This document shows, piece by piece, positions 32,104-58,782 of a stretch of DNA of 64,000 nucleotides (within the stretch, counting starts at the first letter, position 1; every line of letters starts with the position of its first letter). The notes beneath the pieces are model-generated. The model saw only the letters and a list, made by a program, of their open reading frames with translations, had not been told where the DNA came from and made no database searches. Location: NCBI RefSeq assembly GCF_021869535.1, contig NW_026262690.1, positions 77,314,001 through 77,378,000 on the forward strand, written 5' to 3'. The DNA is from Mytilus californianus. Its lineage: Eukaryota. The translations under genes were made by a program, and so were the position numbers.

Positions 32104-33639
32104 ACAGTATGGAAAACCAAAATTTGCCTGACACTTCATACAATCAACAGATTTTGAGACCTTTGTTTAAGAGATATACAAATGTATATAGTTTAAGAAA
32201 AAAAAACAAAATACATTAACATGCTTTTAAAACTATGATAATTTGAATACAAAATGACATCATAGTCATTTTTTATCAACAGTTCATTTTAATATTTCTC
32301 AAATAATCTTTTTTTTGCCAGTACAACAAAAGGTCAATACTAAGTTTTTGAAACCATACTTCAATATTCATTTGTAACACCATCAGTAAGAAAGTATACG
32401 GAAGTCTCTTCTCACAAGTCAATCAGAACTTTAGACCACAATTGAATTAAAAAGATTTAAAAAATAATCCATCTTAAATGAAAGAACCTTTGTGAGCACG
32501 CTCATATACTCCAAGCCCCCACATTGTCATTTGGCAAACAAAATCTCACAAGATTCCTAAGTTCAAAGGCACTTAACTCCTGTCGATATGCACATCTTCA
32601 TATTATGTCCTTATTATCTACAAAGTTCCATGAAATTTTGTTGCATGGTATAGAGGAGTTGGGATGACAAGAACAGGACTTACAAACTGCTGGACATCTA
32701 TAGGCCGTAAGGTGACCTAAAGTTGTTAACTTCTATGTCATTTGGTTTCTGGGGGAGAATTGTCTCATTGGCAATCATACCAAATCTTGTTATTTTTATA
32801 TGTACAATCATTATATGCATCAAATATAGTTGACCTTAGTGTTTATAGTATCTAAGAAAAAAAACTTAACCAGGAAAACTTCAGATTGGCCAATCAACCA
32901 TGAAAATGAGGTCAAGGTCAGATGAACCTTGACAAACAGACATGTACACCTTACAATCATTCCATACACCAAACATAGTTGACCTTTTACTTATACTATC
33001 TTAGAAGAGGACATAACTACCATGAAAATAGTTTCAAGGACAGATGATTACTGCCAGACAGACATGTTCATTTTACAATTATTTCATTCACCAAATATAG
33101 TTGACCTATTGCTAACAGTATTAGAAAAACAGACCAAACCACAAAACATAACATTTACCAATGCACAGTGAAATGCGGTCTAGGTCAAATGAAACCTGCC
33201 AGACTGACATACACCTTACAATTATTCCATACATATATAGTTAACCTACTGATTAAAATATCTGAGAAATGCACCCAATGATGTAAACCTTGCATGTAAT
33301 CCATATACCAAATATAGTTATCCTGTTAATCATAATAAGTGAGAAATTCACATGACAAAAAAAACTAAACTTTTTTTGTAAGCAGTCGCTGAACAATGTA
33401 AATGAGGTCAAGTATAATGGACAGATAACACACAGAAATTTTGTAACATAAGGCATCTGTATAAAAGATATGAAGCCTCTAGGTCTTCTACTCTCTAAAA
33501 TATAAAGCTTATTACAAAAAGTTTATGCCGCTGTTCTTCATTACAATCCCTATGTCTCCCATTATGCAACTTTAGTCACAGGCCAGACAAAAATTCAAAC
33601 AGACTAATTAAATAAAAATTATTTATTTATCTATCCACA

Positions 33640-36600: not shown

Positions 36601-39600
36601 GTCAATATTTATGTGAATAAAAAGTCATAGGGTAACTAGACTATTTAACATTTTTCACTTCTTCTACAAATTCTAAATATTCTTACTGGATAAAGGTAGT
36701 TAATTAGTGGATTTTTTTTATAGGATTTGGTACCTATATTTACATATCTATTTTTAGAACTAGATAATACCGGTATACCTTTTTGAGTCCTGCTATACAA
36801 ATGATATTTCCTGCACTGGCAGTGTTGACATCATGATATTCATTAGAGTATACTTGAATCAGTCTTGATGGTTTCTCTTTACAATTCTTATTCACATTAT
36901 AGATCTCCCCCAAGTTCATCACACCGGAATATAATCTTAGAAATGTTAGTGGTCCTCTGTGTTTATCATGTATAATTTTAAAAGCATATGCACATAAGTC
37001 TGTCTCATAGAACTGAACCAAATCCATTGTTTTTTCTAAAGGACTGGGCAAATAATGGTTAACAGCATCTATCAATGGCTGAACTCCCGCATTCTTTAGT
37101 GATGAGCCACACAGTACTGGAACAATATGTCTGCCGATGGTAGCATTTCTCAAAGCTACATCGATGTCCTCGGCAGTAATGGCACTGTCAGTTATGACAC
37201 GATCTGCTATGTTCTCACAGTAATCTGATAGATTTCCAATTAAACTGTTTCTACACTTTGTTGCTACTTCCCAAAGTTCAGGATCAGTTTTAGAATCCAA
37301 ATCTTTTATGCTGAATATTTGACCTTCAGAACTTTTTTCAAAGTCATATGTTATTTTTTGCATATTTACAATATCAATAATGTCTTTAACTCTGTTACCA
37401 TCAAGTATAGGAAAGTTGACAAGTAAAGGTTTAATTTTCAATTTATCTTGAATTGATTTTAAACATTTCTCAACATCAGCTCTTGGTTTGTCCATTTTAT
37501 TCAAGAACACAATACTAGGGACTTTGTACCTGTTAGCTTGACTCCATACTGTTAAAGTTTGAGCTTCAACTCCTGTAAATAAAACAAGAAAGAATTAACT
37601 TTATTTGATATTATTTTGTCCTTCATACTTTTCAATTATAGGATCTAAATCTCATATGACATTTTATCCCCATATATATGGTAAAATTGAGAATGGAAAT
37701 GGGGAATGTGTCAAAGAGACAACAACCCAACCAAAGAGCAGAAAACAGCTGTAGTGCATTTGAATGTTTTTAAATGAATGCTTTCTGGTTTAAATCAAGA
37801 AAAGACTTTGAATGCCCTGTGACCTTGACTTTTAACATTTGTGCAGTAGGGAAGTACAATTGAAAGTTACTAGGTTCTAGCACAAACCAAGGAAAATAGG
37901 GAATTCTTTCAAAACTTTCAGAAAATGAATTATTAGATGTGATGTCATATAATTTTTGAAGTCAAAACTGACACATAATAGATTTCAATATGGACTCAAG
38001 TATCTTGGACCTTTGGAAATAACACAATTAAGGGCCTTTAACTCACAATCCCAATAAGTTGCTTAGCAGAGGAAACTGATCAAGTATATTAAGTATATAA
38101 TAAGATTTTTGGGGTTTTTATTTGTACTCCATATGTACTTTCATAATATTTATCTTACCAGCAGAAGCATCAATTATTGTTACAGCTCCATCCAACACTC
38201 TCAGGCTTCTTTCCACTTCTACAGTAAAATCTACATGCCCTGAAATTATACACATCTGGGTTTTTTTCAGTTTGTCTAAAGTTTCCTTTTAATTGTCCAT
38301 GTGTATGACTGAAAGGAGAAATAATGAAAAGGTCACTGTTTAATGGACCAAAAAATCATTTGAGTAGTGTTTCAGAACTATTGACAATTCTTCTATTTAA
38401 CAGGTAAAATAATCAAGCAAAATAAGATACTATTACCATCTACTATTCTTGAAATTTGGGTAGACTTGATAAACACACTTTTGAAATTGCAAGAGAACTA
38501 CTTAGATGGGGGCTGAGGGAAACTAAAATAAATAATATCCATCTTTTCTTAATTTAATTAAAACACTGATCGATATGAACACCTCTTTAAATAAGAACAT
38601 TTCAATAGATTTTTATCTCTTGATAATTAATTGAGTCATATAAATCTTTTTTTTTCTTCAATGTTATAAATTGATATCCATTAATGCTGACCACTATACA
38701 AGTTTTACAATCATGTTGAATGTTTGTCTGTAATATCCAGGTTATCAGAGGTAAGAATATCTATTAACATCAGCATCTGCTTAGATCTAATGTAACAAAG
38801 AGGAATCTGAACTTATGCTTTGATATAATCCAACCTAGCAAATTGCCTTTTTTGTCTTTTTTTTAACATATTAGTAGATAATGTTGAAACATAGTGGAAC
38901 ATTATATTGGATGTGGCCCCTGAACATAAACAGGTGAGCTATGGCTGCATTACCAAGCAGTAGTGGACACAATTTTTGGCTCAATTGTGAACACAACAGG
39001 ACTCATGTAACATTACAAGGACAACAAAGATATCAAAAAAATGTGTTTGATTCTTCATATGCTGCCACCTCTTTGGTGGATTTCCATCAATTACTGTACA
39101 TCAAATACTTAAAAAAAAAAGTTTAAAAGTTTTCCTCAAATTAAATGCAATCGGTACATGTCACAAAATACATTCTTGGTTGGAATCATACTATGACATG
39201 TATGAGATCTTTTGAATATGCATTTAAATATAACCAGACCTGGTGTATCTATGAGGTTTATTTTGTGCTTTTTCCAATGAAGTGTAATTGCTGCTGATGA
39301 TATTGTCATTCCACGATTTCTTTCCTGCTCCATGTAGTCCATCACAGTATCTCCATCATCAACATTACCTACAAAAAGTAGATCAATATTATTTCATAAT
39401 AAACTTTCCTTTATGATTTTTTAAACTGACCACTTTTGTACAGAACTAGCCCTTAAATTCTTTTGTCATATCTTAGCTGAAAATGCCAATACTTTAAATA
39501 TATAGTACTATATTTTGCATGCAATATTCAAACACATACCTGTCCTAAACTCTTACTTGAAGCTATGCTTATAAACTTTTATTTGACATTTATCATCTCA

Positions 39601-42600
39601 CCATGCATTTTATGTTTTAAAATGTGTTGTTTTCTTGACTTGTATACATGTATACATGTGTTTGATCTATTGTTGATTTGATGAGCTCAATAAGCTTGTG
39701 TTTTGGAGACTTTGTTGAACTGAGATATTCTTTTAATTTTATTCACTACTTTTCTAGACTCAGGGTGACATATTGTATAGACAATTAACTATCTTCTTTA
39801 TAACAGAAATTGTTGTCAGAGAAAATCTGTGTAATCTGTGTCGATCTGTCTGTCCTTTCCTAGCACGCTTGTTGCATTTTTCTCCACAACTACAAATCAG
39901 AGCTTTTTGGTAATTGGAACAAACTTATTACTGGTAAACTATACAGTGTACCATATTTTTAGATCTGTCACTTATTTAATACTTCCAGATTGGCAAATAC
40001 AAATGTAGATATCTATACCATGACAATGCTGGTAACAAGTGCTACCGCGGAGAGATCATTCAGTGTACTACGTCGGTTGAAAACATATATGATCAACCAT
40101 GAATAACGATTGGTTATCATCGCTAGCATTAATGCATATTCATCGGGATTTCAGTGTGAATATTGACAAAGTAATGGAGAAGTTCGTTTCTGCTTAGACC
40201 CGAAGAGCAGATTTTGGACAATTTTGAGTAAATTCTGTCTCACAAAAATGTGTTGCTTATGTATTCAATTTACCACGATTTACCCTATTCAAAAGAATTC
40301 AGAATAGTTTTGCATTCATGAATTGTCTACAAGTCCTATGTAGCACCTCTTTTTACCCTCCTATGACCGAAAACCGAAAAAAAAATATCATTTTTTGCAT
40401 AAAATGGTCCAAAAGATTTTCGCCTCGCTCCGCTCAGCGGTACATCAGCGTGCACATCATTTTAGTCTAGCTACGCCCCTGGTTTCTATAGATCATTATC
40501 GATATATTAGTATTATTGATATGTACACAAGATATGTCAGATAGTAGATACGGACTGCATTATTCTCATAATTCATCTTTATGAAAAGTATCTGAAAATT
40601 TTCAACGTGTTGTGTGCTTTATAATAGTAGAGAAGCTGATTCCAATTTTCAAGTCTTTAGTTTGAATAAAGGTATGCCAACTTGCCTCACTAATGAAAAA
40701 AAAGAATTAAACAGTTCTGCATTAAGGACTACCAACTCACACCACATATGAAAAGGAGTTTAATCCCAACGAATGAAGGTCTGCCAACTTGACCCACTGA
40801 TGAAAAAAAAAATTAAATCTTACTGCATTCAGGACTACCACTTTCATAAGTGGGGCGAGGAGGCAGGACAAAATTCAACAGGATTTTACCCTTTTTCATA
40901 GGTGGGGCGAGTTGTCATGGATTCCTAATTACAGTTAGCACTTTAATACCTTATATAAGTGCTACTACACTGTAGAGGGTACTCCAGTATCAGAGAGACT
41001 TTTGAATTCAAAATGTCCAAAATTACAGAAAAAATTATAACCCCTTTGTGTGATAAATATAAAATAAAGCTTATACTTAATAATAAATCTTACAAGGCAC
41101 TAAAACTATCTTCCTCTTTCGTAACAAATTGTTTAAATGATCTTAAATGCGAGAAGTAATCTATTGCAATAGATTTTCATTATACATGTATTTTATATTC
41201 ACATAATTGTTTGTATTTTACTACCATGTTTATCCATTCGATCATTACCATTTATTGTAAATGCGTTTGTGCCAATAAAATATTGTCTATTGTCTATTGT
41301 GACTGGTCACTTTATCAACTTTCTGTTTCTCTCATACTTGTAGGTTCCTAACATTGATGTGTAGCAGGAAAAATTCTGCTGGAGATTCGAGGATGCGGAC
41401 GACAGCTTATTCTAGTTTGTGAACTGATTTATACGGAGACGATAGATGCCAAATGCAAAAGCGCTATATAATATCTATGTAAATGAAAACCAAAAACAGT
41501 GAAAACAATATATAATTTAATCAACAATTACAACTTTTATTATGTAAATCCAAAGTAGAAATGGAGCAGTCAATGACTTCACTATTATACCCGTATTAAG
41601 AAGGCATATGGCAGATGCACTAACCTTGTAAAGGGTGGTTGGAAAGCACGGCTTTCCTAGGTTGGACTGAACGTCAGTCCTCAAGCAATTCAACATAACA
41701 ATTTCAAATCAATTATCTAAAATATATACGTTTTCCGAAGAAGGTAATTAAAGGTTCTGCGACGATGCAAATATTAAACTTTAGAATATGAATAAATATC
41801 TTTAACCAATGATTTCAAAATATCAATATCTATTCAATTTAACAAATATGTACTGAATAAGCTTCATGTAAATTATTAAATAAAGAAATATGAAATTTAT
41901 AGTTTTAAACAAGGGAAATAACAATGACATAATAATCCTAACTGCCACATTCCTCCCCCCTAAGACAAACGATAAATTTCATAAATAAAGTCTGCAAACT
42001 GAAATGTCTATCAAATTGATGTATCTGCCACACTAAACACGCAAAATGCAAATGTCATGTAAAATAAATATGAATAATTTGTAATGATTAAACATTAAAT
42101 CTAATATATATCAGTTAAAGTTAAATAATGAGACTGTTCAAGGAGACCACAACACCAGTCTGATACCCTCCTCCTCCCTTCAAAAACCAATGTAAATGAA
42201 ATAACATTTGAAAATTTAAATTTAACAAAAGTCTATCAATGTTCACCAGATTAAATGTCTTTCAAACACATGTAATAATATCACTTAGAAATAAATGTCA
42301 CTGTATAACACATACACAAACACACATCAGAATCAGAATCAGGTTCATCTGTTAACGGACGCGACTTTAAGTCTTCTTGGTAAGTAGGCTTCATATTCAG
42401 TGGTACGGCATATATTGTAATGGCACATCTAATGTTGAAATCCATGAAAAGTTATACCAGGCAATGTCTACCAATTTTGATCTCACAGTGGCACATTTGA
42501 CGTGTACCACCGGGTTCTATTACTGCACTCCAACGTTGTTGATAACGGTAACACAGACGTTGTGCCACCGATTGAAAGCACCATTCAGCTGAACAAAATA

Positions 42601-45600
42601 TACTGTTTCTGATCTGCACAGCAGACCTAGACTTGCAATTTAAGTTGTACCAGGTAATCTCCACCACTGTTGATCTCACAGTGGCACATTTGATGTGTAC
42701 CACCGGGTCCTATTACTGCATTCCAGCGTTGTTGATAACGGTAGCACAAATGGTGTACCACCGGGTCCTATTACTGCATTCCAGCGTTGTTGATAACGGT
42801 AGCACAAATGGTGTACCACCGGAGATGGATCGGGTCCATCTATATGCAAGGTTCTCAAAATAAAGTTGGACGATGCCCAACTGTTATAGCAAGGTTCTCA
42901 AAATAAAATGTATGATGCCCAAATTTTGTGCAAGTTACTAAATAATGGATCGGGTCCATCTGTATGAGCTAGAAGTGTTTCTAACTTGAAGCTTAACTTT
43001 CACTCTATTGGTTTCTGCCATAACTAATAAAAGTCAAGAGGTCGGACTTCTATAAACTCTCTAAATACTAAATATTTAGCTAGAGATTACAATCCAGACA
43101 AATGAGCAACAACTCATAAACAAACCAATTCCTACTAAAACTAGCTAACAGTCTACACTTCAAACTACACAGAAGATCAGCCTTTATTCAAGTAATAATA
43201 AAAATGAAAAATATAACAAGATGAGATGCACGGCATCCCTCCCTTGGAAAAAGAAAAACCAAACAGCCAAAATTGAGGCGTATGACACCTCTGAGTATAC
43301 ATTGAAATAAATCTAAAGTAAAACTGTATATATACAACACAATGTAAAAACAAAAATTAAACAAAGGTAACACAATCTGAACTACAAAAATTGTGATTTA
43401 AATCGTTCTTTAATATCCCTTCTATTTTTGAGAATTTCACTTGACTATCTGCAGACCTTTCATCTCTAGCATGGACTCTAAGAGACACATTTGGACACTT
43501 AGACCTGACATGACCTAACTGATGACATTTAAAACATTTCTTATGTTTACGTTTCCTATGTGATCTCAGTCGCCTCCTCAAGATATTCATTAAAATTTCA
43601 AAATTCTTATGAACAGTATCACAACAAACTGAACTTTCTGACTCATCAATAGTTTCTGGATCACCAGTAAAATGAACAGCTTCATATTCAATAGCTAGTG
43701 ATAAAGCCTCGTTTAAACTATGAGGGTGCTTAAAAGTGACAAATTTAGTCATCTCAATATTCAAACATGATGTAAATAAGTCAGTAAAATACACATCTAA
43801 ATCTGAAAAATTATCAGGATAAGCCTTATGAGCTAGTATCTTGAAACGCTGACCAAAGTCAGAAATTGTCTCATTTTCCTTCAAACTACACAGTCGCAGT
43901 TGAAATTTAAAATATGCCTCCCTCTCCTTAGGATTGAACCTCTGAATAAGTAAATTTTTCAAGCAGTCATAATCATACAACTGTGGCCTTTTTACGAAAC
44001 GTAAAATAGTTTGAGCATCACCTCTCAAATTCATTATTAACTGACATTCCATCTCAAATTCATTCCACTGATTCCAAAGAGAAACTGTCTCAAAATGAAC
44101 AAAATAATCTGTAACATCAATGCGGACACCATCAAACAAACAAGGTTTTTCTTCAAACCTAATCATAACTCAATATGCATTTACAAAATGAATCAAACGA
44201 TGAAAATAAAATACCCAAGGAACAACTATCCGCCCAATTCTTCAAAACTGGTCTGCTTAGGACTATCATATCCAACTACAAGTACTGACTCAAATGTTTG
44301 CTCCATTTCTTATAAATAATTTAGTTCAGTTACAAACCAGAAAAGTTGCTTTATAACTCCGCATCCGCCTCGCGGGACCTACATGTAGCAGGAACAATTC
44401 TGCTGGAGATTCGAGGATGCGGACCACAGCTTATTCTAGTTTGTGAACTGATTTATACGGAGACGATGGATGCCAAATGTAAAAGCGCTATATAATATCT
44501 ATGTAAATGAAAACCAAAAACAGTGAAAACAATATATAATTTAATCAACAATTACAACTTTTATTATGTAAATCCAAAGTAGAAATGGAGCAGTCAATGA
44601 CTTCAATATTATACCCATATTAAGAAGGCATATGGCAGATGCACTAACCATGTAAAGGGTGGTTGGAAAGCACGGCTTTCCTAGGTTGGACTGAACGTCA
44701 GTCCTCAAGCAATTCAACATAACAATTTCAAATCAATTATCTAAAATATATACGTTTTCCGAAGAAGGTAATTAAAGGTTCTGCGACGATGCAAATATTA
44801 AACTTTAGAATATGAATAAATATCTTTAACCAATGATTTCAAAATATCAATATCTATTCAATTTAACAAATATGTACTGAATAAGCTTCATGTAAATTAT
44901 TAAATAAAGAAATATGAAATTTATAGTTTTAAACAAGGGAAATAACAATGACATAATAATCCTAACTGCCACAGATGCATGTATCATGTGTATAACAAAA
45001 TGTTGTATCATTTTCATACATTCCTAATACATTTGTGTACATGTACTTAGTACCAATTTTAGTATGGTAAGCTTAAATGTGTGCTAATCTACTTTGTTAG
45101 AACCATCATGATCAAATTCAAGCAGACATAACTCACTAAGTTTTATGAGAAACATAGTTTACATTATTTTTCATTTAAATAGTAGTCTAGTTTGTGGCAG
45201 TGGAATAATATGTTAGATAATTTCTCTCATTACTAAAAGTATTTGGAACTGTGGAATGCTCAAAGGACTTGAAATGTAAACAGCAAAAGTAACAAATTCA
45301 TATGAATAAATAGTGCAGGGTACGTAAGCGAAATAGAAACATAAAGAACATCTTGTGGGCAAATTGTGTAAGTATATAAAGTGTGGATAATTGTTACCAA
45401 TATGCCTTGTGAATCCAGAGTAAAATAACATTCTCTCCGATGTTGTTGTTTTTCCGGCATTGATGTGGGCCATGATGCCAATATTTCTGATATTTTGCAT
45501 TGGTTCATCCTTTAGACCTGGTTTTGGTGCGGACGACTTTAAACGTTTAAAATGTTTACAGAAGCATGTTAATTTGTGCAAACAGTATCGCCTGTACATC

Positions 45601-45641
45601 ATTTGAGATTTTTGATGAATCTTGTGGAGGTTATGGAACAT
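33640..45641 (-). CDS. GFM2: Mitochondrial ribosome-releasing factor 2 / elongation factor G2 (about 757 aa, 8 coding exons)
   Basis: Exons 45641-45398, 39368-39240, 38239-38159, 37572-36779, 36462-36220, 35640-35286, 34599-34433 and 33900-33640 total 2274 nt in frame. Motifs: [62 protein letters not shown] single G-domain and EF-G domains II-V are present, and the divergence pattern fits GFM2 rather than GFM1. Confidence 0.92.
39985..40481 (+). mobile_element. hAT transposon 3' remnant (dimerisation domain plus TIR)
   Basis: From 40020: [23 protein letters not shown](M), frameshift, [19 protein letters not shown], typical of the hAT C-terminal dimerisation domain. GCTACGCCCCTG at 40470-40481 is a plausible 3' TIR. 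Confidence 0.75.
40950..41300 (+). mobile_element. CR1/L2-like LINE 3' remnant
   Basis: [14 protein letters not shown] resembles the H.LL.C..Y...R ORF2 C-terminus. It is followed by AATAAA and a short tandem tail (TATTGTC)n. Confidence 0.5.
41360..44973 (-). mobile_element. Gag-only (non-autonomous) Ty3/Gypsy LTR retrotransposon in GFM2 intron 1
   Basis: Direct 590-bp LTRs at 41360-41949 and 44384-44973 (TG...CA, about 7 mismatches by eye). 4-bp TSD GATG at 41356-41359 and 44974-44977. Polypurine tract (minus strand CTTAGGGGGGAGGAA) abuts the 3' LTR at 41950-41964. PBS-like sequence at 44368-44383. Confidence 0.92.
43357..44166 (-). CDS. gag: Retrotransposon Gag with CCHC zinc knuckle (269 aa)
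   Basis: Intact ORF with Gypsy capsid signature FDG...[14 protein letters not shown]...[27 protein letters not shown] and [14 protein letters not shown]. It ends in a stop with no protease, RT or integrase motif recognised downstream. Confidence 0.9.
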   Translation of the reverse strand: MIRFEEKPCLFDGVRIDVTDYFVHFETVSLWNQWNEFEMECQLIMNLRGDAQTILRFVKRPQLYDYDCLKNLLIQRFNPKEREAYFKFQLRLCSLKENETISDFGQRFKILAHKAYPDNFSDLDVYFTDLFTSCLNIEMTKFVTFKHPHSLNEALSLAIEYEAVHFTGDPETIDESESSVCCDTVHKNFEILMNILRRRLRSHRKRKHKKCFKCHQLGHVRSKCPNVSLRVHARDERSADSQVKFSKIEGILKNDLNHNFCSSDCVTFV

Positions 45642-46059
45642 CTAAAAGTTACACCAGCATACGGACGTAGACTGGATGAATCCGGATAATAAAATTCACA
45701 ATCTTTTCTGAGGTTTTTTTGCTAGCTATTAACATGATCCATATCAAAAATATAGTCTGCCCCTCTATGTATCCTTATTTATGTTTGTTATAAAAGCTAT
45801 ACTACCTATTATTAGTAAAGGTTAATTCATATAAAAATTCTGTATGTATATCCGATATGTTTATATAGTTGATTTGAGTAGCATAAGAAAGTAAGCTGTT
45901 TATAATGGCCCAACTTGATAAGTAATCTAGTTAAAAAAATCTTTTAAAACTATTTAGTTCTGTTTACCCTCCGACCCTGACCAAATATGAAAACTGTAAA
46001 CTGATGAATAAACATGTAATTTTGTTCTTTTTGAATTTGCTTCACTCGCCGTGTTTGAA

Positions 46060-46930
46060 CTTTCTTTTAAGCCGGTATACTTTTATGTCCTTCAGTTTTA
46101 GTCAATGACATAGCTCTTCAACTGCTTCGGTTCTTATACATCCTTGGCTTTCAAATATTCGGTTTTGAGCGTTCGAATTCCTAACTGAAGGTAAATCTAG
46201 AAAAGCGCTTCGAACTTGACGCATAAAATTTATAAAATGTTCAGTGTTTTCATTTTTTTACAACACCGAGTCGATATCGCTGCTGGTAGACTATCAGTCC
46301 CCGAGGTATCAATAGCTCAGTAGTCAGTACTTTGGTGCTGACATGATTAATGAGGGGGTGGACAGCTTTTAAGGGAGGTGGGAGGTGGGGGGGGGGGGGG
46401 GGGGGGGGGAGAGAAAAAAATAGGTGGGAGAGAAAAAAGATTCTAAAAGTGGGAGGTGGGAGATAGGGGCGGGAGGTGGGAGAAGGGTATCCCCCTGTGC
46501 ACCCCCTCATTAATAACAAACCTTTCTTAAATTGTGACTTTGCCCGTTTAAAAATTTATTAATTATTTTAAAAAAATCTAAGGTTGCAACTCTCTCAGGC
46601 AAAGTTGACCTTAGATGAATTTGGCTATTATTTCTAGGTCGTTTTTTGTTATATAGCTCTTCAAATGTTTCGGTTCTTATGCATCTTTGGCTTTCAAATA
46701 TTCGGTTTTGAGCGGTCCTGCTGAAGTTAAATCCAGAAAAGCGCTTCGAACGCATGCAATTTATAAAGTGTTGCTTTCATTTTTACAGCACTGGATCGAT
46801 ACCACTGCTCAGTTCCTAAGGTATCATCAACTCAGCAGTCAGTACTTTGGTACTGACATGATTTATGACAAACTTTTCTTAAATTGTGATACGAAACTAA
46901 GGTTTCAACTCCCTCAGGCAAAGACTTTTC
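46060..46930. repeat. Two tandem copies of a ~300-bp interspersed repeat
   Basis: GGTTCTTAT.CATC.TTGGCTTTCAAATATTCGGTTTTGAGCG...AAAAGCGCTTCGAAC at about 46128 and 46672. Confidence 0.75.
46346..46514. mobile_element. G-rich mini TIR insertion
   Basis: ATTAATGAGGGGGTG ... CACCCCCTCATTAAT. The paralogous repeat copy near 46850 shows the empty site GACATGATTTATGACAAAC. Confidence 0.8.
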
Positions 46931-47334
46931 ACAAGAGTTCAGCAGGTCACATGTTTTCATCCTTTTGATTGTGACATGCTTTAGACGTCCTGTGTCATAT
47001 ACAAAAAAAATCTTACTGATTCAGGAGGTTTCATTATGATAGAACTTCACTTGACTGATACTCTTAAAAAATAATATTATTGCTTATTCATTAATATTCG
47101 CGTGCTACCAATTTCCGTGGAGTTCATGTGTGAGTGGAAAACACGAGCTCAAATACTTAGCGGTTAAAACGTTTAAGTACATTTGATAGGAATTAATGAT
47201 GAAAGCACGAAAAAATGTATTCCTCGAAATATCAATTGTATCTCAACCGTGAAGTGTATACGAACAAAGATGATATATAAATCTATAGTAATTGCATGAT
47301 TTCCCTTGTTGTTTCAATTCAATCTTAACTTTTA

Positions 47335-47475
47335 CTAGGATTGTCAGTTTTCCTACTGAAGGTCGGTGGTTCTCTCTCTTGGCACTCCGGCTTCCTAAAA
47401 AAACTGACCGACACGAAATAGCACAATAGTGCTCGGAAAGTGGCATTAAAAACCAATCAATCAATCAATCAATCG
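47335..47475 (+). mobile_element. SINE 3' half with V-domain-like core (second copy at 30685-30820)
   Basis: GGTCGGTGGTTCTCT..GGCACTCCGGCTTCCT...CTGACC..CACGAAATAG..CAATA...GAAAGTGGCATTAAA with a (CAAT)n tail at both sites. Confidence 0.55.
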
Positions 47476-48849
47476 TAGTTGTTTCAACAGAGACATATAA
47501 TATATATATATTGTATTATATGTCTCTGGTTTCAGGAAGAATATCTTTCAGTGCAAAATTCGATAAAATTTAGTAAAATCTGGCTACACTCCACAATACA
47601 TGACGATAGAACCGTCGAGTGTAACTTGACAGACAACCTATGTAATAATAAGGCAGAATTCAACAATGTACACAAAAGTTCAGTGTAGCCAGAGATATAT
47701 ATGTGTACATATTTCTCTGGTGTAGCGTATGAAAAAAAATTAATTCAAATTGTTTCAGATAAACACGAAAAAGATGGACAACGAATTTCGGCCGACAATA
47801 GCTTCTATTCCGCAAATGTGAACAACGTGGGCTTGGAAACAATGATAGTTAGAGAGCATTAACTACGAGCTGAATTTTTTTCATGTTTTTGCAGTTTCTA
47901 ATAATTATCAATAACCAAATATTGAATACTAATTCGTTATTAGCTGTCAGTTTGGTTCAATAACATGAACGGTACCAATTTTTCTGCACCAGATGCGCAT
48001 TTCGACAATAAATGTTTCTTAGGTGATGCTCGAGGCCAAAATATTTGAAAATCCAAAACTTGCTTAAAAATATTTGCCAAAGTAAGCTCCAAAACTTCAC
48101 CGATACATTGTTTACTCGCAAAGCAATAATTCAACTCCATCAAATCCATCTGCATGCGACCTGTTATTCACCTCAGTTGAAGATAATTACGCATATGCTC
48201 ATCATGTTCGGTTATTGAAAAAAATATTGCCAGCTGAAGTGACACTATGAATTCAATGGGAAGACCGATAACACTGACTATATTGTTTTTATTATAAAAT
48301 TCTGACATACATCATTCTAACACCGAACATTAGTCGATCTCTATTCGTCTAGTCGCAACTCTAGTAGAATCTAAGTATTGGCAAATGAAATGTCTCTGGT
48401 CTAGAAGACAGTAGAGTAAAACCGAAAAGTTTAAAAGTAACACTGTGAGTGTAAAAGATGTAAAAAAAGAACAAAATTGCATGTTTAAAGTTCACGTACA
48501 GTTTTCATATTTTGTCAGGAGAGTAAATAGAACTTGATGTATTGAAAATACTTTTTGAACTAGATAACGAAATTACGTACCAAGTTGGGTCATATATAGA
48601 TAACTTACTTGCTTATGCTAATAAAAATTTTACAACTCTAACATATTTGTGATACCGCATACTGAATCAACCTTTACTAATAATAGGGTGTATAACTTTT
48701 ACAACTTAGAGGCAGTGTCGTAGTCTTAGTGTCCTTTGTAATAGATGTATTATGTTTATGGTTGACTAAACCAACTTTAAAACCGCCATATTTATTATTT
48801 TAAGTGAATCTAGAAGCACGCTAGAAAAATATCTAATATACAGATTATA

Positions 48850-48967
48850 ATGGCTAGGAAAGACAACCGTCGGAATATATGTATGGTTTTGTGTTTTGTG
48901 ACAGTAGTCATTATTGCATTACTTGCTGTAGTTATATACCTTGCCACCAGGGGTTCTATCTGTCCAG
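48850..48967 (+). CDS. Upstream exon encoding a signal-anchor peptide, in frame with GALM
   Basis: MARKDNRRNICMVLCFVTVVIIALLAVVIYLATRGSICP ends at the strong donor CAG|GTAAGT in phase 1. The GALM acceptor TTACAG|AAAGTGAAATG (49430/49431) continues in frame as E-S-E-M. The exon is preceded by acceptor-like ATACAG at 48843. Confidence 0.7.
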
Positions 48968-49438
48968 GTAAGTAAAGCTTGTGTTATTATTTACAAATCT
49001 TTTTATAGATAAATATTCTTACATAACAAGGTCATTACTATTCTATAGTAAGACAAGACAGACGTTATACATTCCGTTTGAATTCACTTTTAATTCCGAG
49101 AAAAACAGTATATATAAACCTTAAGATAGATTCATTTGATATCTAGTTGTTTAGATCAATCACTCGTTTGTATCCAAATTTAAAGTAATTATAGTAACTC
49201 CACAGATTCGTGAAAGGTCACTGCTTAAATGCAACTGAAAATGCTCAATTTTCCACTCAAAAACAAACACTTTTTGTGTAGTATGATGCTAATAGTACGA
49301 GGTCATCATAGTTGTTATTCAGTAGTATGATATGATACTTCAAACATAGAGTAAATACAAATAGTGGTTTTCAATGGTTTTGTGTATGTGTATACTAGTG
49401 AGTAACACCTTGTCGTGATTGTCTTTACAGAAAGTGAA

Positions 49439-52400
49439 ATGTCTTCGATTTCGAAAGAAGAATATGGAGAGTATAAAGGAGAAAAGGTTTTTCAGTAAGT
49501 TACTTTATTTTATAAAATTTAGGTCAACTGCTATGGCGTAGCTTGACTCTTAAATTTGTCGTGAGACAAATAATTTGCAGCTGCTAGTCTCGTGTCAGTC
49601 AAAGGGAAGAGGCGGTATATTTCTTTCATGATGTTTATACAAGATAACATGCAACTTTTAAGATTTTAAGGTGGCAAAGTGATGACAGGGTAATATAAAT
49701 ACGATCACTTTTGGTCTTCTTCCGACCGGCTATAAACCCCTTGCCAAAGTTGAGCGTCCGTTTGGTTTTTAGGATGATGTATAAATACGCAGTCACGTCC
49801 GGTCAGAATGGGAACTTGTAATCCAATGCCAAAAATGAGAGTGCCACGCTCTCTGCACGTTAAGAACTCTTGAAACTTATTCTTTGAAGGGTCCGTAGGT
49901 GGCCTGTTGCCAGGTTAAATTTCTGTTCTTTTCCAGTTCACCCTCAGTTTCCAATGTAGTCCTATCATCTCTTCTTGCACATGCATGAAATATTTGCCAC
50001 TGGACGTAAAGCAAACATCGATAAATCTACGAATCTACGATCGAACGGGAAAAATTTCCTTGTTGATTGATTGATTGTTGTTTGCCTAAGACGTCTAGTG
50101 GCAAACATTTCATCCATATTCAGAAAGAGAACAAAGTAGCAATAAGTCCAATAAGAAGATTCTGTAATGCGAGTCAACGGGTATGAAGCCGGGGAGAAAA
50201 TTGCGACTGTCGCTGGACAATAAGGGTATGTTGGATAGGGACAGAAAAGTGCATAGCAAAAGGCTGCCTGCAGACCCCTCAAAGAGTGTTGTAATGGGTT
50301 TTAATCATGTATACAGCAAGTCTCCATACTGATCGGATGTGACTGCGTATATTTATACATCCCGGCTCAGCCAAATTAACCCTACGGAATGTATATTTTG
50401 ATATTTTGAAATTAGAAGTTTGAATTATTAAAAGGTCCTTATTCCTTTATATGTTCATGATGAGATTATCTATTGCATATATGATTTTATTATAATGTTT
50501 TCAACCAAAGGATGTATATCGATTAGGGATCACTAAAATGTGAACTAATAACAATGCATTTTTATGAAATAACTGTATCAAATATTGCAAACAGTAAGTT
50601 CAGAGTACACATCAAATCATGAAATATGTCTTCTTACACTATAATATCGGTCGCTGTACTCCTAAATAGATTTATGTAGCAACGTCACAGGCAGAGCAAG
50701 AAAACACACAAATTAAGTAACGCTCAGCAATAAGTGCAGAAAATATTTGTTATTCTGTTTAAGATATACACTACAGAACAAGAATAACGTAAAAGTACAG
50801 ATCATCAACTTTGGAGGAATAATTACCAATATTTTTGTTCCGGACAAAAATGGTAAAATAGCAGACATAACTTTAGGATACGATAGTTTAGATAGTAAGT
50901 TTACAAGTAGCAGACTTTTATACTTATTAAGAATCATACTTTTCATAAAAGCCGATAACGTGCATTTTTGATATAGTTGGTCATTGATTTATGAGTATCC
51001 TGAAATCATATATATACAGGTGTGTTGGCTCGCAAACATATCTTCCACTACTTCTAAAAATAACAAAGCATAATTAAATTTCATTCATTTATAGATGATG
51101 AAAACGAATTCAAACTATATTATGATACACTGTATTCAAATTATAAATTATCAGAAATTTCATGTATGTCTGAATATCTCAAAGATTTAAAGGACCGTCT
51201 ACAATATATTTATTAGTAAGGGAGCTACCATTTGATTTTTATGGGGGCTAGGATGAAAAAAAATTTCCTGCCTTTTTTTTTAGTTGTAATCTCTGTCCTG
51301 CCTTTTTTTAATTAGTTTATCCTGACTTTTTTTACATAAATTGTCATCCTGCCTTTTTTTTTTGCAAAGTTGCTCATCCTGTCTTTTTTTTATTACTCAG
51401 AACTCCTTTCCTGTCTTTTTTTTCAAATTTCATCCTAGCCCCCCCCCCCCCCCCCCCCCTAAAAATCAAATGGTAGCTCCCTAATGTTTACTTATTAACG
51501 ACATCAACCTACACACCATCTTCAATCACTGTAAAAAAGGTGTAAATTAAAGAATGAATTTGTTTGAATTGTTACGTTAATCTTGCTTTTGATTTTCAAG
51601 CTCACATTGAAGTATCCTGAGATAGGGATCTAAAATAATTTGAATTTAAAGTTTTAAATCTGTTGTATAGGGTACACAAAACCTGGTCCATATTTTGGTG
51701 CTATCATAGGGAGATACGCCAACAGAATAGCTAATGGTACATTTGAGCTGGATGGAAAGAATTACACATTAGAAGTGAATAATGGCCCAAATTCTCTACA
51801 TGGTGGAAAGTTTGGCTTTGATAAGGTATGAACAATGAGAATAAATAACATATTGCATTGAAAAATATATCTTTGGTCAGGTTATACCATGGCTTTTGTT
51901 CTTGTCGCATAGTTCTACGAGAGACACTTAGCAAAAACTAGACACACTTAATTCCATGGCCGAAAAAATGAACAGTTAGAACAACGAACAGTCCATAAAA
52001 CTAGGGCTTTTTTACTAGGCTTTGCAAATTGCAAATGGCTGCTATTTTTGTTCGAGCATATTGTTTTTCTTAAATTGTTTAACATTTCACAGCGGTATAT
52101 CATGTTACTTTTATTATTCTTCCCTTAGTTTATATATTTTGTATTTACATTGTATCATAGATCAAATTTATTTGTTCAGTGTATGTTCACTGGTGTTAAT
52201 ATGTCCTTTGATTGAGTCAAGCCATTTCAGTTGATATTTTATAGTGTGTCTTTCTATGTTGTGATGTTACACTATTGTTTCAGATAAGGGTGAATGTTTG
52301 GTACCATTAAAACGTTTAAACCCGCTGCAATTGTTTGCACCTGTCCTAAGTCAGGAATCTGATGTTCAGTAGTTGTCGTTTGTTGATGTGGTTCATAAGT

Positions 52401-55400
52401 GTTTCTCGTTTCTCGTTTTTTATATAGATTAGACCGTTGGTTTTCCCGTTTAAATGGTTTTACACTAGTAATTTTTGGGGCCCATTATAGCTTGCTGTTC
52501 GGTGTGAGCCAAGGCTCCGTGTTGAAGACCGTACTTTGACCTATAATGGTTTACTTTTATAAATTTTGACTTGGATGGAGAGTTGTCTCATTGGCACTCA
52601 TACCACATCTTCTTATATCTATTTGTAAACTAACATGAGAAAATACTGCGGTCCTTTTCACAAAAAATCTTAAGAGTAAAAATACTCGTAAGTCATACAC
52701 ATTTCAGTATAACTTACGATCAATTTTAATCGTAAGAAGTTTTGTGAAAAGTGTCGCTGGTCCTTAGGAATCACCGAAAAGTTTTATTCATTTTTTTTTG
52801 TATTTTTAAACCGATGTAAATCGAACCACATTTACGTTCCATTCGCTTTTCGCTAATGTTATACTAGTAACCTTTAAAAGAACTTTATCTTTCATCCTAA
52901 TTGTAACATGAATGGAAATGTTTCTTTTGATTTTCGAGAGAGTTAACTGATGATATTTATAGATGAGTGCATTATACCATTATTCTATATCCACGTTGAC
53001 CACTTGTCGTAGGAAAGCAAAGAATTGCAAGAGCTTACACCAGTGCTTTACATTCTATCTCAGAAGTTGTTATTGCACTGTCTGGCTCCGCCTACTCGGA
53101 CTGTTAAAAATTGAAACAATGAAACCTTTTAACTGTGTACACAGGAAAAAGTGCCACACATGTTTTACGCATGGAATAAAAAAGTTTGTAAAACGTATGT
53201 TGTTTGGTGCGTTTAACGCATGTTTTATTCAACATGCGTATAACACACGTGCAATAACACATAAAATATGCGTTACAAAACATTATATCTCATGCGTAAA
53301 ACATATGTTTGTACAAACGCATGAAAAATACATGTTTGCGTATATTTCACATGAAATCCACACATGATGTCTTTTGATAGCTGTTGTTTTTTTCTTTTGG
53401 CTTTATTTTGTTTTTTATAAGGGGCAAGTAACAATTTACAAATGAAAAACTACAGTACGTGGACAAAAGTATACATGTGTGTTTTCAGAAAGTGTGGGAG
53501 GCTTCAGAAGATGATGATATATTAGCCTTGAAGTATGTCAGTGCCGAGATGGAGGAGGGTTATCCTGGAGAAGTGACAGTCGTTGTTACCTATATGTTGA
53601 CAGAAGATAACGAACTCGTAATCCATTATACTGCTAACACCACAAAGAAAACTGTCATAAATCTTACTAATCACGCTTACTTCAACTTGGCTGGTCAGGT
53701 AAATCTTTGTGAATAAGAGATACAAGAGGCAAATTTTACTCTTATCTTGCTGTTTTGAAATTCAGACACACTATCACAAGAGAAAGAAATGGTAAAAACA
53801 AGTGTTAAAAGAAGCAACTTTCTGTTTTGAAAGTCAAACAACGGCCATCTCGCAAGGGAAAGTAATGGTAAAAGTGATTGGTGACAAACACAATGAAGGG
53901 CAGTTTGTGATAAGGTGACCAATTTAGGTAGCCACTTACCAATCTTACTGTTTTGAAAGTCAAACAAGCTATCACGCAAGGGAACGTAATGGTAAAATTA
54001 ATTGGTGACCCACACATCGAATGGCACTTTGGGTGATACGGTGACCAAGTTAAGTAGCAACTTATCATGCTGCAAATATCTTTATTGCTTATGATCAGAC
54101 GCGAGTGTGGTAAAAGGTTAACACATAAAGATCAAACTAGCTTGTCCTACAAGAGACATGATGAGCTTGAAAAATAAAACACTTTTATATTGTTCTTGTG
54201 TATTAGTTAGTTTTCTCATTTGAATTGTTTTACATTGTCATTTCGGTGTCTTTTGTAGCTTACTATGCGGTATGGGTTTTGTTCATTGTTGAAGCCCGTG
54301 CAGTGACCTATAGATGTTAACTTCTTGTCATTTGGTCTCTGGAATCCGGAATATCAAACAGAGAGTCTGTCCTAATCGCATTTATGTTATGATATATGTT
54401 ATGTTTTGTTTTTCATATATTCACCAAGTCTTTATCAAGTGACTAGAAAAAAAGCAGTGCAGAGTTTTTTTAATTAAATTTTGATGATCATAGCAATTTT
54501 TTTTTTTTATTAAATTTTGATAATCATAGCATTTTATTATTTTTTCTAAACATTTTATATCTTTTAATTGTCTTTTTAGATTTTGTTTAGCAGTCTTTCA
54601 AAGATTACATTTTCAGCGAATTTACATTTAAACGGTCAATGTTTTAATGGCAAGTTTACTTTATGTAAACATTCTTCAAATTTGGTTTATGAAAAATAAT
54701 AAAAGATGAAGTACTTTTTAAAATTCATGAAAACTCATGAAAATTTGATGGATGAATTTATATATACATCGCTGCAACGTAACAAACGAACATGTATACG
54801 CAAAAGCATTAAAAGGCGTAAAAAAACTTTACAATATTTGACAATTTTCGGACGAAATTCATGTTTCCTCCAAAACACGTTGTATGTTTTTATGTTTAGA
54901 ATACGAAATCATAGCTCAGAATCACGTGATTCTGAACCTTCTGATATACTTACAGTTATTTGTCATGAGTACTTGAGTTATTTTTATTTTTTCAGGGCAC
55001 CGGTGATATTTTGAAACATACTGTAGAACTAAATGCCGACAGATACCTTCCCGTAAACGATGTTTCTATTCCAACAGGTAATTTCACGATTCAGACATGA
55101 AAACGAATTCTCCCCATCCCCTCCCCAATCCCATTATATGTTCAAAAAGTATGCATCTGTATATTGAAATGAAGTGAATTATAAAATTCCCTTTTCTCCC
55201 ATGAGAAGTATATTGATCGATTATTAGAGATGTTTTTAAATCGTAGGTACTTCTACCGTTTTTATTTGTTTGATCTGTACAAATAATGATCTATAATGCA
55301 AAGTATTTGAATCCATCGATATAATGCATTATTATCGAACTGAACTAATTCATCATCCGATTCTATACTTTCTTTCAGATTGACTTATCAACTTTTGGTC

Positions 55401-57596
55401 CAATATTTAATGCAAATCCCAAAACCTCCGAAACATCGGCGGGGTTTCATAATCTAACATAAGATGATGTAAGCAGTTACTGTGTATATATAGTCCACTA
55501 CCAAATACCCCTTTTTGCTCTAATTATGTAGACATTCAAACCGGTTCTGGTCAGTTCAATAAATGATAAACCACACATTGATTAAAGTTGTCTCTTGCAA
55601 TTTCTTGTCATATCCTTTCTGCACTTTGCACTCTGCTTTTCCGCTAATTTCATTAGAGAAACAGATTCTAGCACTTTATCACGTTAGCTACGATATTTTT
55701 CCACTCTCCGTAGTAACTTTGAAATGCTCAGGAAACATTCCGGGCATTTTAAAGTTTAACAATTTAACTATCTCGAGTGGATTAATATCGTGCTCGTCGT
55801 ATTTACAAGCATCCGTCTGCTGTGTGGGTTATTAATTTCTGACTAACCAGTAAGACGTTGAACAAAACCTTGCTTTGTATCTTTTCGAAGGCGATCCTGA
55901 AGCAGTAGAAGGAACTAAAATGGACCTCAGAACTCCCATAAAGTTAGAAACAGTGATCGACGATGTGCCAGGCAATGTAGGGTATGATCATTGCTATTGT
56001 TTTAGTGATGCTGGTTGGAAGAAACTCAGAGCAAGGTAAACAAGGTTTAACTGTGAGCATCACAACATTTTATATCGGAGAATCCAGAATATTGAAAAGG
56101 AGTGTGGTAGTTTTTCATATCGGTTTAAGATTTGTATTTATAATCCTTTTCTTCTCATTTTGTATTAACCTTATATTTATTGGCTTCATCATTTAGGAGC
56201 AGGACCCATTGACCTTCAAATTTGCCACTGTTTTTTTATGGCTACTTGTCTAACTGGGAGGCAGGTTAATTTGGTACACACAAAACGCAGTCGTAGTTGA
56301 CACTTTAACTCAAGCTTAAACTGAATTTGAAAATCTGTGAATTTTAATATATTTAAGAAGAAAATAACGTATTCTGATTAAAATTGAGAAGCAAAGCGAT
56401 ATCACAGACATTAGTTTATTTCGAATGAAAACAACTGTTCATTATAAGTGTTACGAGGATGTTACAATCTTAATAACTTCTTTAAATTCAAATAACACAT
56501 TTTAGTCTATAAGATATTTCCGTCTTAATAGCTTCATTAAATTCAAATAATTATGTTTTGTCTTTAAATATCTTGAAGTAATGAAGCGACTTCAAAATTC
56601 TTTGTCAGATGTGTAATCTTTCAAATGCATTCCAAAGAATTCTGTTGGTTGCAGGGCTAAATCAGGAAAACCGTTTTTAAAGAATTAAAATAAATTAAAA
56701 ATATAAAATATAACGATGTCAACCTTCATCAACTTTAACATGAATTATTGAAGGGAACTCGATTTTTACAGGGTTTATGAGGAAGTAAGTGGTAGGAAAT
56801 TAGAAGTCTACAGTACAGAACCTGGTATGCAGTTCTATACTGGATTTTATTTAGATGAACCTGGTAAAAAAGGTGGACATTATCATAAATATAACGGGTT
56901 TGCATTAGAAGCACAACATTATCCAGATAGTCCACATAATGTAAGTATGCGTCTCTCTTATAATAAACTAGTAAGACATATGCCTATATAGGTGACCTTT
57001 AGATGCTTAGCTAATTCTGTCCATGTGGTATCTGGTGAATGTCTTACTTATGTCATCTCATGACGCAACAACTGAAAGTTCAATTTGTGACAACATACCA
57101 CTGCATGGTTATATTTTCTTGACGTTTTCTGTCAGTAAGAATAGGTAACATTATATTGTCCCTAATTAATTTAAGCATGTCCACAGATGACCACGGATCG
57201 TAGCCACAATCCCGTCCTCTTTTCCTCAATTTGGAAATCACCGATTTAAATTATCACCGAATTTTTTACTTAAAATGAGCAACAAGACGGGTGTCAAATG
57301 TGAAAGCAAGTTCTGCTTAACCCCCAGAGAACCAGCACGAAATCATTCCAGGGTTTTTGTTTGGTTTAGCGTTGCTCAGTCTTTATTTTTCTATGTAGTG
57401 TTTACTAGCATTTCGTCGTTTTTATGGTTTCTCTTCAACTTATGAGTCTTGACTGTCATTTTATTATCTCCCACCCTTTATTTACATTGTGACCATAATT
57501 CCACTTGTTTTCTTACAGAAAAATTTCCCATCAACAGTACTATCACCAGGAGAAACCTATTTACAGACAACATCATATAAGTTTGGATTAGTATGA
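49439..57596 (+). CDS. GALM: Galactose mutarotase (aldose 1-epimerase), 341 aa, 8 coding exons
   Basis: Exons 49439-49494, 50764-50894, 51671-51825, 53489-53698, 54996-55077, 55891-56035, 56772-56940 and 57519-57596 total 1026 nt in frame. Motifs [43 protein letters not shown] and LEAQHYPDS retain the catalytic His and Glu. AATAAA near 57818. Confidence 0.95.
51220..51481. mobile_element. PIF/Harbinger-type MITE in GALM intron 2
   Basis: TIR GGGAGCTACCATTTGATTTTTA / TAAAAATCAAATGGTAGCTCCC, TAA on both flanks, internal CCTG.CTTTTT repeats. Confidence 0.85.
52230..52622 (+). repeat. Interspersed repeat ending GAGAGTTGTCTCATTGGCA.TCATACCACATCTTC (other ends near 32750, 59760, 62310)
   Basis: The same 3' signature is seen at several places in the window. 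Confidence 0.6.
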
Positions 57597-58041: not shown

Positions 58042-58314
58042 TCATCCTTTGTCAGTTTCAGTCTCTTCTTTATCTTTTGATAAAGCATCTTGATAAATAA
58101 TAGCTACGATTTCTTCCAAGTTTTGTTGTTTTCCAGAATGTGTTTTATTAACCACAGCACCATCTAAACATGGATCCTGTGAAGACAAAGTTTGTGTATT
58201 TCTTTCCAATAACTGATACATTTGACCTTCTTTCGTTTTCTCAAGAGCTGTTAGCATTTCTTTGGCAGTTGGTTCCTTTGTCTGTTTTCCTTTCACTTTG
58301 TTTAGTCGTCTCTC
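58042..58314 (-). CDS. Terminal coding exon of an unidentified gene convergent with GALM
   Basis: Strong acceptor (T)nCTGCAG, then an open frame ERRLNKVKGKQTKEPTAKEMLTALEKTKEGQMYQLLERN...ETDKG*. Minus-strand AATAAA near 57932. A phase-compatible 34-nt exon lies at 58608-58575 (TTTTAG / GTAAAT). Confidence 0.6.
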   Translation of the reverse strand, partial: ERRLNKVKGKQTKEPTAKEMLTALEKTKEGQMYQLLERNTQTLSSQDPCLDGAVVNKTHSGKQQNLEEIVAIIYQDALSKDKEETETDKG

Positions 58315-58782
58315 TGCAGAAAAAAAAACAAGCAAATGTGGAAACAAATTGAATCGGCAGTGCCGGTTAAGAAAAATGAGCGTCAAGTTTATGGCTAAAT
58401 GAACATAAATAAAAAAAAACAGTAGAAAATACTGACCAGTATAATAGTTTTATGCTTGATATCTGCAAATGACTATGGGCAGATTTGAAACAAAGCCAGA
58501 TTAAAAATGGGAATCATGTAAGATGGTGCGTTCCATTATGCCAATGAATAATGATAAAATTAGGTGAAATTTACCTCGCAGGTTGAGGACTTGGTATGAG
58601 TTGACACACTAAAACGTCGAGCCTGATATAATATTTTAAAAGTTCATAACTACAAACCATGCCCTGATGTAAAGTTAACCTATATAATACTTATGTAAAC
58701 AGGATAAAATCTCGACCAAATATTGTTGACCAGCCATGTGTAATTTTTATCTAAACACTTTAACCGGACCACTGGAAAGCAA

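Follow-up and report, generated by a model that had tools for sequence, protein, structure and literature searches.

An alternative first exon, conserved among bivalves, adds a predicted membrane anchor to the galactose mutarotase of the mussel Mytilus californianus

Galactose mutarotase (aldose 1-epimerase, GALM) has been described in animals as a soluble, cytosolic protein, and the human enzyme is a cytosolic member of the Leloir pathway. The 5' end of the galactose mutarotase gene of the mussel Mytilus californianus raises the question of whether one animal gene can also place this enzyme on a membrane. The locus lies in a stretch of 64,000 nucleotides (nt) of contig NW_026262690.1 (assembly GCF_021869535.1, positions 77,314,001 to 77,378,000 of the forward strand), which is free of N runs; we refer to the whole stretch as the window and count all positions from its first letter. 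An initial annotation, made from the letters alone, had pointed to a short ATG-initiated exon upstream of the gene and had proposed that it gives rise to a membrane-anchored isoform. The analysis presented here indicates that a single gene, transcribed from alternative starts, yields a membrane-anchored mutarotase of 383 amino acids (aa) and a cytosolic one of 341 aa, a reading to which we assign a probability of about 0.85.

The full gene was rebuilt from the window sequence. The canonical form has eight coding exons, begins at the ATG at 49439 and encodes 341 aa, and every exon border conforms to AG/GT; the extended form begins one exon further upstream and encodes 383 aa. The elements of the gene are as follows.

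48850-48967, plus strand: exon 1, the putative signal-anchor exon, an alternative first coding exon of 118 nt with a phase-1 donor (homologues, substitution rates, hydropathy, AlphaFold, RefSeq model)
48968-49430, plus strand: intron 1 of the anchored isoform, GTAAGT...TTTACAG, the 3' part of which doubles as promoter and 5' untranslated region (5'UTR) of the cytosolic isoform
49431-49494, plus strand: exon 2, shared by both isoforms; 49431-49438 are E-S-E linker codons in the anchored form or 5'UTR in the cytosolic form, 49439-49494 is the first canonical coding segment, and GTAAGT follows 49494
50764-50894, plus strand: GALM exon 3 (RNA junction, match to the Pfam family Aldose_epim, gene model)
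51671-51825, plus strand: GALM exon 4, with the NSLHGG motif and the sequons NGT and NYT
53489-53698, plus strand: GALM exon 5, with the catalytic NLTNH motif and the sequon NTT
54996-55077, plus strand: GALM exon 6 (gene model; colinear with L085, a complementary DNA (cDNA) contig described below)
55891-56035, plus strand: GALM exon 7 (gene model; L085 cDNA)
56772-56940, plus strand: GALM exon 8, with the LEAQ motif and its catalytic Glu
57519-57596, plus strand: last coding exon of GALM, stop codon included (gene model)

Exon 1 opens with the ATG at 48850, which has an in-frame stop 12 codons on its 5' side, and continues for 39 codons and one base to 48967, where it meets the donor CAG/GTAAGT; its 5'UTR reaches upstream of 48850. 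The acceptor, tttacag/A at 49431, lies 8 nt ahead of the canonical GALM ATG at 49439. When the two are joined, the split codon G/AA, followed by AGT GAA (E-S-E), leads in frame to ATG 49439 (MSSISKEE) and extends the protein by 42 residues, so that the exon borders, phase and extension originally given for this locus are exact to the base. The exon 1 peptide consists of a basic N-terminus (net charge +3), a hydrophobic helix of about 23 residues (initially counted as about 21) and the sequence ATRGSICP, with the motif IYLATR-x3-C-P. The 383-aa product, also of the length first predicted, is identical residue for residue to RefSeq XP_052058360.1 (P0009, "galactose mutarotase-like [Mytilus californianus]"), and the annotated gene of this protein on GCA_021869535.1 covers exactly window positions 48850-57596. 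The join of exon 1 to GALM is already modelled in RefSeq, and the sequence itself is not new.

Two other uses of exon 1 were considered and rejected. Splicing from exon 1 directly to exon 3, with exon 2 skipped, would bring phase 1 against phase 2 and is out of frame. Membership of exon 1 in an upstream gene, which the initial annotation had named as an outcome that would speak against its proposal, finds no candidate: the nearest upstream neighbour, an EF-G/GFM2-like gene, sits on the minus strand, and exon 1 therefore does not come from an upstream plus-strand gene.

The reality of exon 1 was judged from its relatives. A word search with the exon open reading frame (ORF) recovered a 67-aa ORF (P0001) on JGI contig L001. 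A profile search with the 39-aa exon, run over 1.84 billion representatives, yielded no more than two short ORF fragments, both genomic, and added P0002 on Logan contig L002. A scan of metagenome contigs with a degenerate pattern of the exon DNA produced one more genomic copy (L003), a 99.5% match to L001 across the exon, and no cDNA. L001, L002 and L003 are unspliced genomic copies. In L001/L003 and in L002, an ATG opens an exon of exactly 118 nt that ends in a donor, G/GTAAGT or G/GTGAGT, at the equal position and phase, and the three diverged lineages (window, L001/L003 and L002) agree in exon length, donor position and phase. When the window is compared with L001, the exon alone aligns, at 73% nucleotide identity, and the flanks are unalignable. 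The homologous exons differ by 15 synonymous versus 9 non-synonymous codon differences, distributed over the three codon positions as 11, 4 and 18; the synonymous rate (dS) is 1.4-1.65, with synonymous sites near saturation, and the ratio of non-synonymous to synonymous rates (dN/dS, omega) is 0.10-0.14.

A chance ORF in AT-rich DNA by the promoter was initially the favoured explanation of exon 1 (at about 70%), given the missing junction and the intron-internal transcript starts described below. It is ruled out, because exon length, donor and phase are conserved between unalignable flanks and omega is as low as 0.10-0.14. On the strength of these comparisons, exon 1 is a real, conserved alternative first exon under purifying selection. 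Conservation of the frame in related species, which had been proposed as a check, is borne out by the 118-nt exon of equal phase in L001/L003, L002 and the cDNA L085. GALM exon 2 is absent within the ~580-620 nt downstream of the exon in L002 and L003. Within positions 1-1292 of L001, the exon region of this contig is duplicated in both inverted and direct orientation (for instance, 1127-1150 is the reverse complement of 917-941); the contig looks like a palindromic assembly chimera, and L003 is clean.

The splice that joins exon 1 to the enzyme is directly visible in a related mytilid. Relatives were found by aligning the window exon pieces to a bacterial GalM ORF scaffold (L005:1312-2343) and searching with that alignment. 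Logan contig L085, 1657 nt long, carries an uninterrupted 385-aa ORF (P0012) at 252-1409. Exons 1 and 3-9 of the window line up with it in the same order, and the exon 1 match stops exactly at the equivalent of 48967. The L085 linker reads ESEKE-M, versus ESE-M in the window, an in-frame indel of two codons located in what is 5'UTR in the cytosolic form. The 5'UTR of L085 is contiguous with the genomic DNA of L003 upstream of the ATG, and the exon is therefore a true first exon in the L085 mytilid. L085 is transcript-level proof of the exon 1-GALM junction in this relative, and many oyster cDNAs, among which the long form is abundant, likewise show the upstream exon spliced to the shared acceptor.

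Pairs of long and short forms extend across the bivalves. The following forms, annotated or assembled, were compiled from cluster members and a full-length search; 'anchored' denotes a long form with the predicted N-terminal anchor.

Mytilus edulis: anchored X1, 383 aa; short X2, 341 aa
Mytilus trossulus: anchored X1, 383 aa; short X2, 349 aa (third first exon, same acceptor), and X3, 341 aa
Mytilus galloprovincialis and M. coruscus: anchored, 383 aa; short 341-aa model in M. galloprovincialis
Two other mytilids (cDNA): anchored, 385 and 387 aa; short, 343 aa
Magallana gigas: anchored X1, 391 aa, with at least 9 Logan cDNA variants on 1-7 contigs each (short contigs); short X2, 354 aa
Crassostrea virginica: anchored X1, 393 aa; short X2, 357 aa
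Saccostrea: anchored, 389 aa (S. cucullata X1); short, 339 aa (S. echinata X2), from two different species
Pecten maximus, Argopecten and Mizuhopecten: anchored X1, 394-395 aa; short, 342-361 aa (Argopecten, Mizuhopecten)
Sinanodonta (unionid): anchored long model, 391 aa
Mactra (heterodont, mactrid): anchored long model, 390 aa

The cDNA variants from the other mytilids number three of 385 aa and one of 387 aa. In the alignment, the N-termini of the long forms are homologous and consist of a basic stub, a hydrophobic core and the sequence (V/I)IY(L/F)A(T/V)(R/K), often followed by Cys. The M. trossulus isoform X2 (P0126) places a third alternative first exon (MEHKRK...) onto the same acceptor; no counterpart of this exon was found in window positions 44000-49500. 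Beyond the bivalves, some of the likely gastropod GALM homologues (P0171 from Bulinus truncatus, 450 aa; P0168 from Logan, 410 aa; P0179 from Bradybaena, 365 aa) have N-terminal hydrophobic segments or a signal-peptide-like start. In a 572-aa model from Pinctada imbricata (P0004), an incomplete GALM copy is joined to an anchor-like segment and a complete GALM; the model reflects either a tandem duplication or a merged annotation.

Which of the two forms is made in M. californianus itself was addressed with RNA. Four runs were aligned to window positions 45650-51640 (5991 letters): raw stranded RNA reads (X21, of which ~6% of the run was read and joints were listed only at three or more reads), RNA contigs from two runs (X1 and X12) and X4, which contains repeats only on the aligned stretch. 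The exon 2-3 junction, 49494^50764, is crossed by 36 reads in X21 and by a single contig from each of X1 and X12. These contigs begin at 49278 (X1, 1399 nt) and at 49382 (X12, 1283 nt), and both continue unbroken through 49431 into exon 2. Read depth in X21 rises from 8 to 13, 29 and 40 at positions 49413, 49423, 49453 and 49485, a smooth 5'-end ramp that passes 49431 without a jump, and the 5' ends of the cytosolic transcript fall at about 49278-49400. Because the contigs start within intron 1 and read depth climbs evenly across the acceptor, the dominant mRNA in the sampled mussel RNA is one that has its 5' end in intron 1 and codes for the 341-aa cytosolic form. A 341-aa Logan protein is also on record (P0136). 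A cytosolic form from the second ATG, initially suggested as a possible companion of the anchored one, is accordingly the principal product in this RNA. Taken with exon 1 and its relatives, these data point to two classes of transcript with alternative starts, the upstream one of which adds a conserved, signal-anchor-like exon in frame. Short patches of very high depth at 49850-50050 and 51050-51450 (both in GALM introns) and at 46050-48250, with many loose read ends, recur in every aligned run, including a run of another species; they are dispersed transcribed repeats and not GALM exons.

The extra N-terminus has the properties expected of a membrane anchor. In the 383-aa form, the Kyte-Doolittle mean reaches 3.30 over residues 10-28; across all 13 aligned bivalve long forms, the 19-residue mean is at least 2.98, versus 1.25 or lower in every short form. 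The N-terminal flank of the hydrophobic segment carries a charge of +3 and the C-terminal flank -1, with ranges of +1 to +4 and -3 to +1, respectively, in the 13 long forms. An AlphaFold model computed from the 13-sequence alignment (mean predicted local distance difference test score, pLDDT, of 78.7) has a helix at residues 5-33 (pLDDT 82-86), a disordered linker at 34-42 and a beta-sandwich from residue 45. From hydropathy, flank charge and this helix, the long form is predicted to be an uncleaved type II membrane protein (N-terminus in the cytosol) with its enzyme facing the lumen.

The domain behind the linker is a complete mutarotase. Residues 3-343 of human GALM (1SNZ) align with residues 43-382 of the 383-aa form with an E-value of 1.7e-92, four exon pieces match Pfam Aldose_epim (PF01263) at gathering score (27.5 to 67.2 bits), and the precomputed Pfam match for the RefSeq protein is likewise PF01263. 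The motifs NSLHGG, NLTNH, (Y/F)DH and LEAQ align with those of human GALM, and their His and Glu do not vary among the 13 bivalve long forms; we take these residues to be the catalytic and sugar-binding His, His, Asp and Glu of GALM. The anchored form would thus carry a complete GALM domain and is predicted to be catalytically competent.

The mechanism we propose is that this stretch forms the 5' end of a gene that makes two proteins from one catalytic domain. A transcript that starts upstream of 48850 would include the 118-nt exon and splice 48967^49431 in phase 1 to give the 383-aa protein. The first ~33 residues of this product would act as an uncleaved type II signal anchor, made of a basic cytoplasmic stub and one transmembrane helix, and a flexible linker of ~10 residues would tether the GALM beta-sandwich, which may face the secretory or endosomal lumen or the cell exterior. 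A second transcript, which starts inside intron 1 and reads through the acceptor, would give the ordinary 341-aa cytosolic enzyme of the Leloir pathway. Candidate compartments for the anchored enzyme are digestive endolysosomes, the cell surface and the Golgi.

Several observations weigh against an anchored isoform in M. californianus, or against a lumenal site for its enzyme. The 48967^49431 joint, for which a search among RNA reads had been suggested at the outset, is not listed in any of the four runs sampled, within the fraction of X21 and the three-read threshold given above. The 200-base bin that holds exon 1 has a mean depth of ~0.46 in X21 (about one read, on the GALM strand), versus 29-40 reads at the sampled positions of exon 2; the anchored form therefore makes up no more than a few percent of the GALM RNA of the sampled run and is minor there. 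No Logan cDNA is on record for the exact 383-aa Mytilus protein. Three runs of this species that are probably RNA do contain exon-1 words, at shares of 0.50 (X2), 0.47 (X7) and 0.27 (X23) in a search with exon 1 and its flanks, where an exon 1 with a short 5'UTR should give roughly 0.3-0.5, and these words could stem from unspliced RNA or DNA. The type II topology and the localisation are predictions. The sequons carry little weight: the 383-aa product contains NGT, NYT and NTT, as first noted, and in addition NLT, which is the sole sequon conserved across the anchored orthologues, lies in the catalytic NLTNH motif and is also present in cytosolic human GALM. The other sequons vary between bivalve orders, and N-E/V-T before GKGG, common in other bivalves, is absent from the 383-aa product. 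Since only NLT is conserved and the human cytosolic enzyme has it too, sequons were rejected as a sign of lumenal location, and the support that they had been thought to lend to a lumenal domain is weak.

These gaps in the RNA leave room for the idea that exon 1 is not used for GALM in M. californianus, the RefSeq join being homology-driven or ab initio and the exon lying silent, belonging to a different transcript or forming a small ORF of its own. The lack of junction reads or contigs in the four aligned runs agrees with this, as does the profile search, in which this N-terminus was met only as two short genomic ORF fragments. Against it stand the purifying selection on the exon in this lineage, the same 383-aa X1 modelled beside short isoforms in M. 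edulis and M. trossulus, the junction carried by the mytilid cDNA L085, the exon-1 words in the three probable RNA runs, and a nearest upstream gene on the other strand, which leaves no upstream plus-strand gene to own the exon. We consider non-use very improbable, and from the RefSeq model and the exon-1 words we infer that the junction 48967^49431 is used in this species. If the long form is made, its hydrophobic N-terminus might still be a cleaved signal peptide, which would render the protein soluble and secreted or lysosomal. The family does include secreted and periplasmic proteins; the N-termini of many bacterial GalM ORFs resemble signal peptides or those of lipoproteins, and the plant aldose 1-epimerase-like protein NbAELP is secreted by means of a signal sequence and reaches the cell wall (PMC5622589). 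A stretch of small residues, A-T-R-G-S, directly follows the mussel helix. The hydrophobic core, however, spans ~23 residues, compared with 7-15 in the h-region of a typical signal peptide, AlphaFold gives one continuous helix from 5 to 33, and the best-conserved part of the exon (LLAV-IYLATR) lies at the helix end, where a cleaved peptide would face little constraint. Cleavage is therefore held to be unlikely.

The anchor could also fix the enzyme to the outside of an organelle (endoplasmic reticulum, mitochondrial outer membrane or endosome), facing the cytosol, and so localise Leloir mutarotation while keeping it out of the lumen. The catalytic domain is common to the cytosolic isoform and has acquired no conserved extra sequons or disulfide pattern, and N-terminal signal-anchored proteins with cytosolic domains are generally known; yet the charge bias is the opposite of what this arrangement calls for in 13/13 bivalve long forms, and by the positive-inside rule the N-terminus would be cytosolic and the domain lumenal. 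A tether of this kind seems as improbable as a cleaved signal. The preferred topology, in which the N-terminus stays cytosolic and the enzyme is lumenal or extracellular, is favoured because of the positive-inside rule, the ~23-residue core and the conserved end of the helix. As for the initial proposal of a membrane-anchored mutarotase, its gene structure has held up, through the RefSeq model, the L085 cDNA and the bivalve isoform pairs; the Golgi or cell-surface site and the N-glycosylation that came with it remain conjectural.

Other features of the window, and one just downstream of GALM, are listed below.

33600-45641, minus strand: EF-G/GFM2-like gene (Pfam GTP_EFTU and EF-G_D2), divergent from GALM, with its first coding exon at ~45216-45641
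43360-44169, minus strand: 270-aa ORF with matches to Retrotrans_gag and Ty3 capsid profiles, within an intron of the EF-G-like gene
27636-29919: satellite array with a 136/262-bp period, ~17 copies and 82% matches
26591-27162 and 27356-27584: tandem arrays near the satellite, 161-bp x 3.5 and 35-bp x 6.6, respectively
About 58042-58596, minus strand: CCDC32-like gene (PF14989), just downstream of GALM (public annotation, L084 10193-10747)

Comparison with known systems places the two mussel proteins differently. Human GALM (1SNZ) is alike end to end over mussel residues 43-382, with the catalytic motifs kept and the same predicted beta-sandwich, and the 341-aa mussel isoform is its direct counterpart; the human chain has no counterpart to the 42 extra N-terminal residues (stub, transmembrane helix and linker) that derive from the alternative first exon. 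The bivalve 'galactose mutarotase-like isoform X1' models XP_071159398.1, XP_063428049.1 and XP_011448800.3 are orthologues with the same N-terminal architecture as the 383-aa product. In the source names retrieved, the bivalve long isoforms are called only galactose mutarotase or aldose 1-epimerase, and a membrane anchor is not mentioned. No paper on a membrane-anchored animal mutarotase was found in full-text searches, the coverage of which is incomplete, so that this is not proof of absence. NbAELP and the bacterial GalM proteins with signal peptides are alike in belonging to the same fold family and in using an N-terminal sequence to direct the enzyme out of the cytosol. They are, however, products of separate genes with constitutive and apparently cleaved signals, whereas the mussel gene uses alternative first exons to encode both a cytosolic protein and one with a predicted, uncleaved type II anchor. 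The layout of the mussel long form, with a 9-residue basic tail, an anchor of ~23 residues, a short disordered stem and a globular domain, is that of Golgi type II enzymes such as glycosyltransferases. The mussel domain is a mutarotase and not a transferase, and its stem is very short, at ~10 residues; the likeness is one of predicted layout.

The new element is the recognition of the anchor and of its conservation, under purifying selection, in mussels, oysters, scallops, a unionid and a mactrid clam, within models that were already public. It provides a clean example of dual targeting through alternative first exons, and it raises the question of why an animal would need a mutarotase at the cell surface or inside secretory or endosomal compartments. 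Possible roles include the processing of dietary sugar once extracellular or lysosomal glycosidases have acted, the anomer preference of transporters, and glycan salvage. It is about an even bet that an ancient mutarotase, facing the lumen or sitting at the cell surface and made from the gene of the cytosolic Leloir enzyme, persists in bivalves and perhaps in some gastropods. It would speed the interconversion of galactose or glucose anomers where glycosidases release sugars or transporters take them up (for example digestive-gland endolysosomes, the gut or gill surface, or the Golgi). If such a mutarotase is indeed made, an animal would be regulating sugar anomerisation at a site outside its cytosol.

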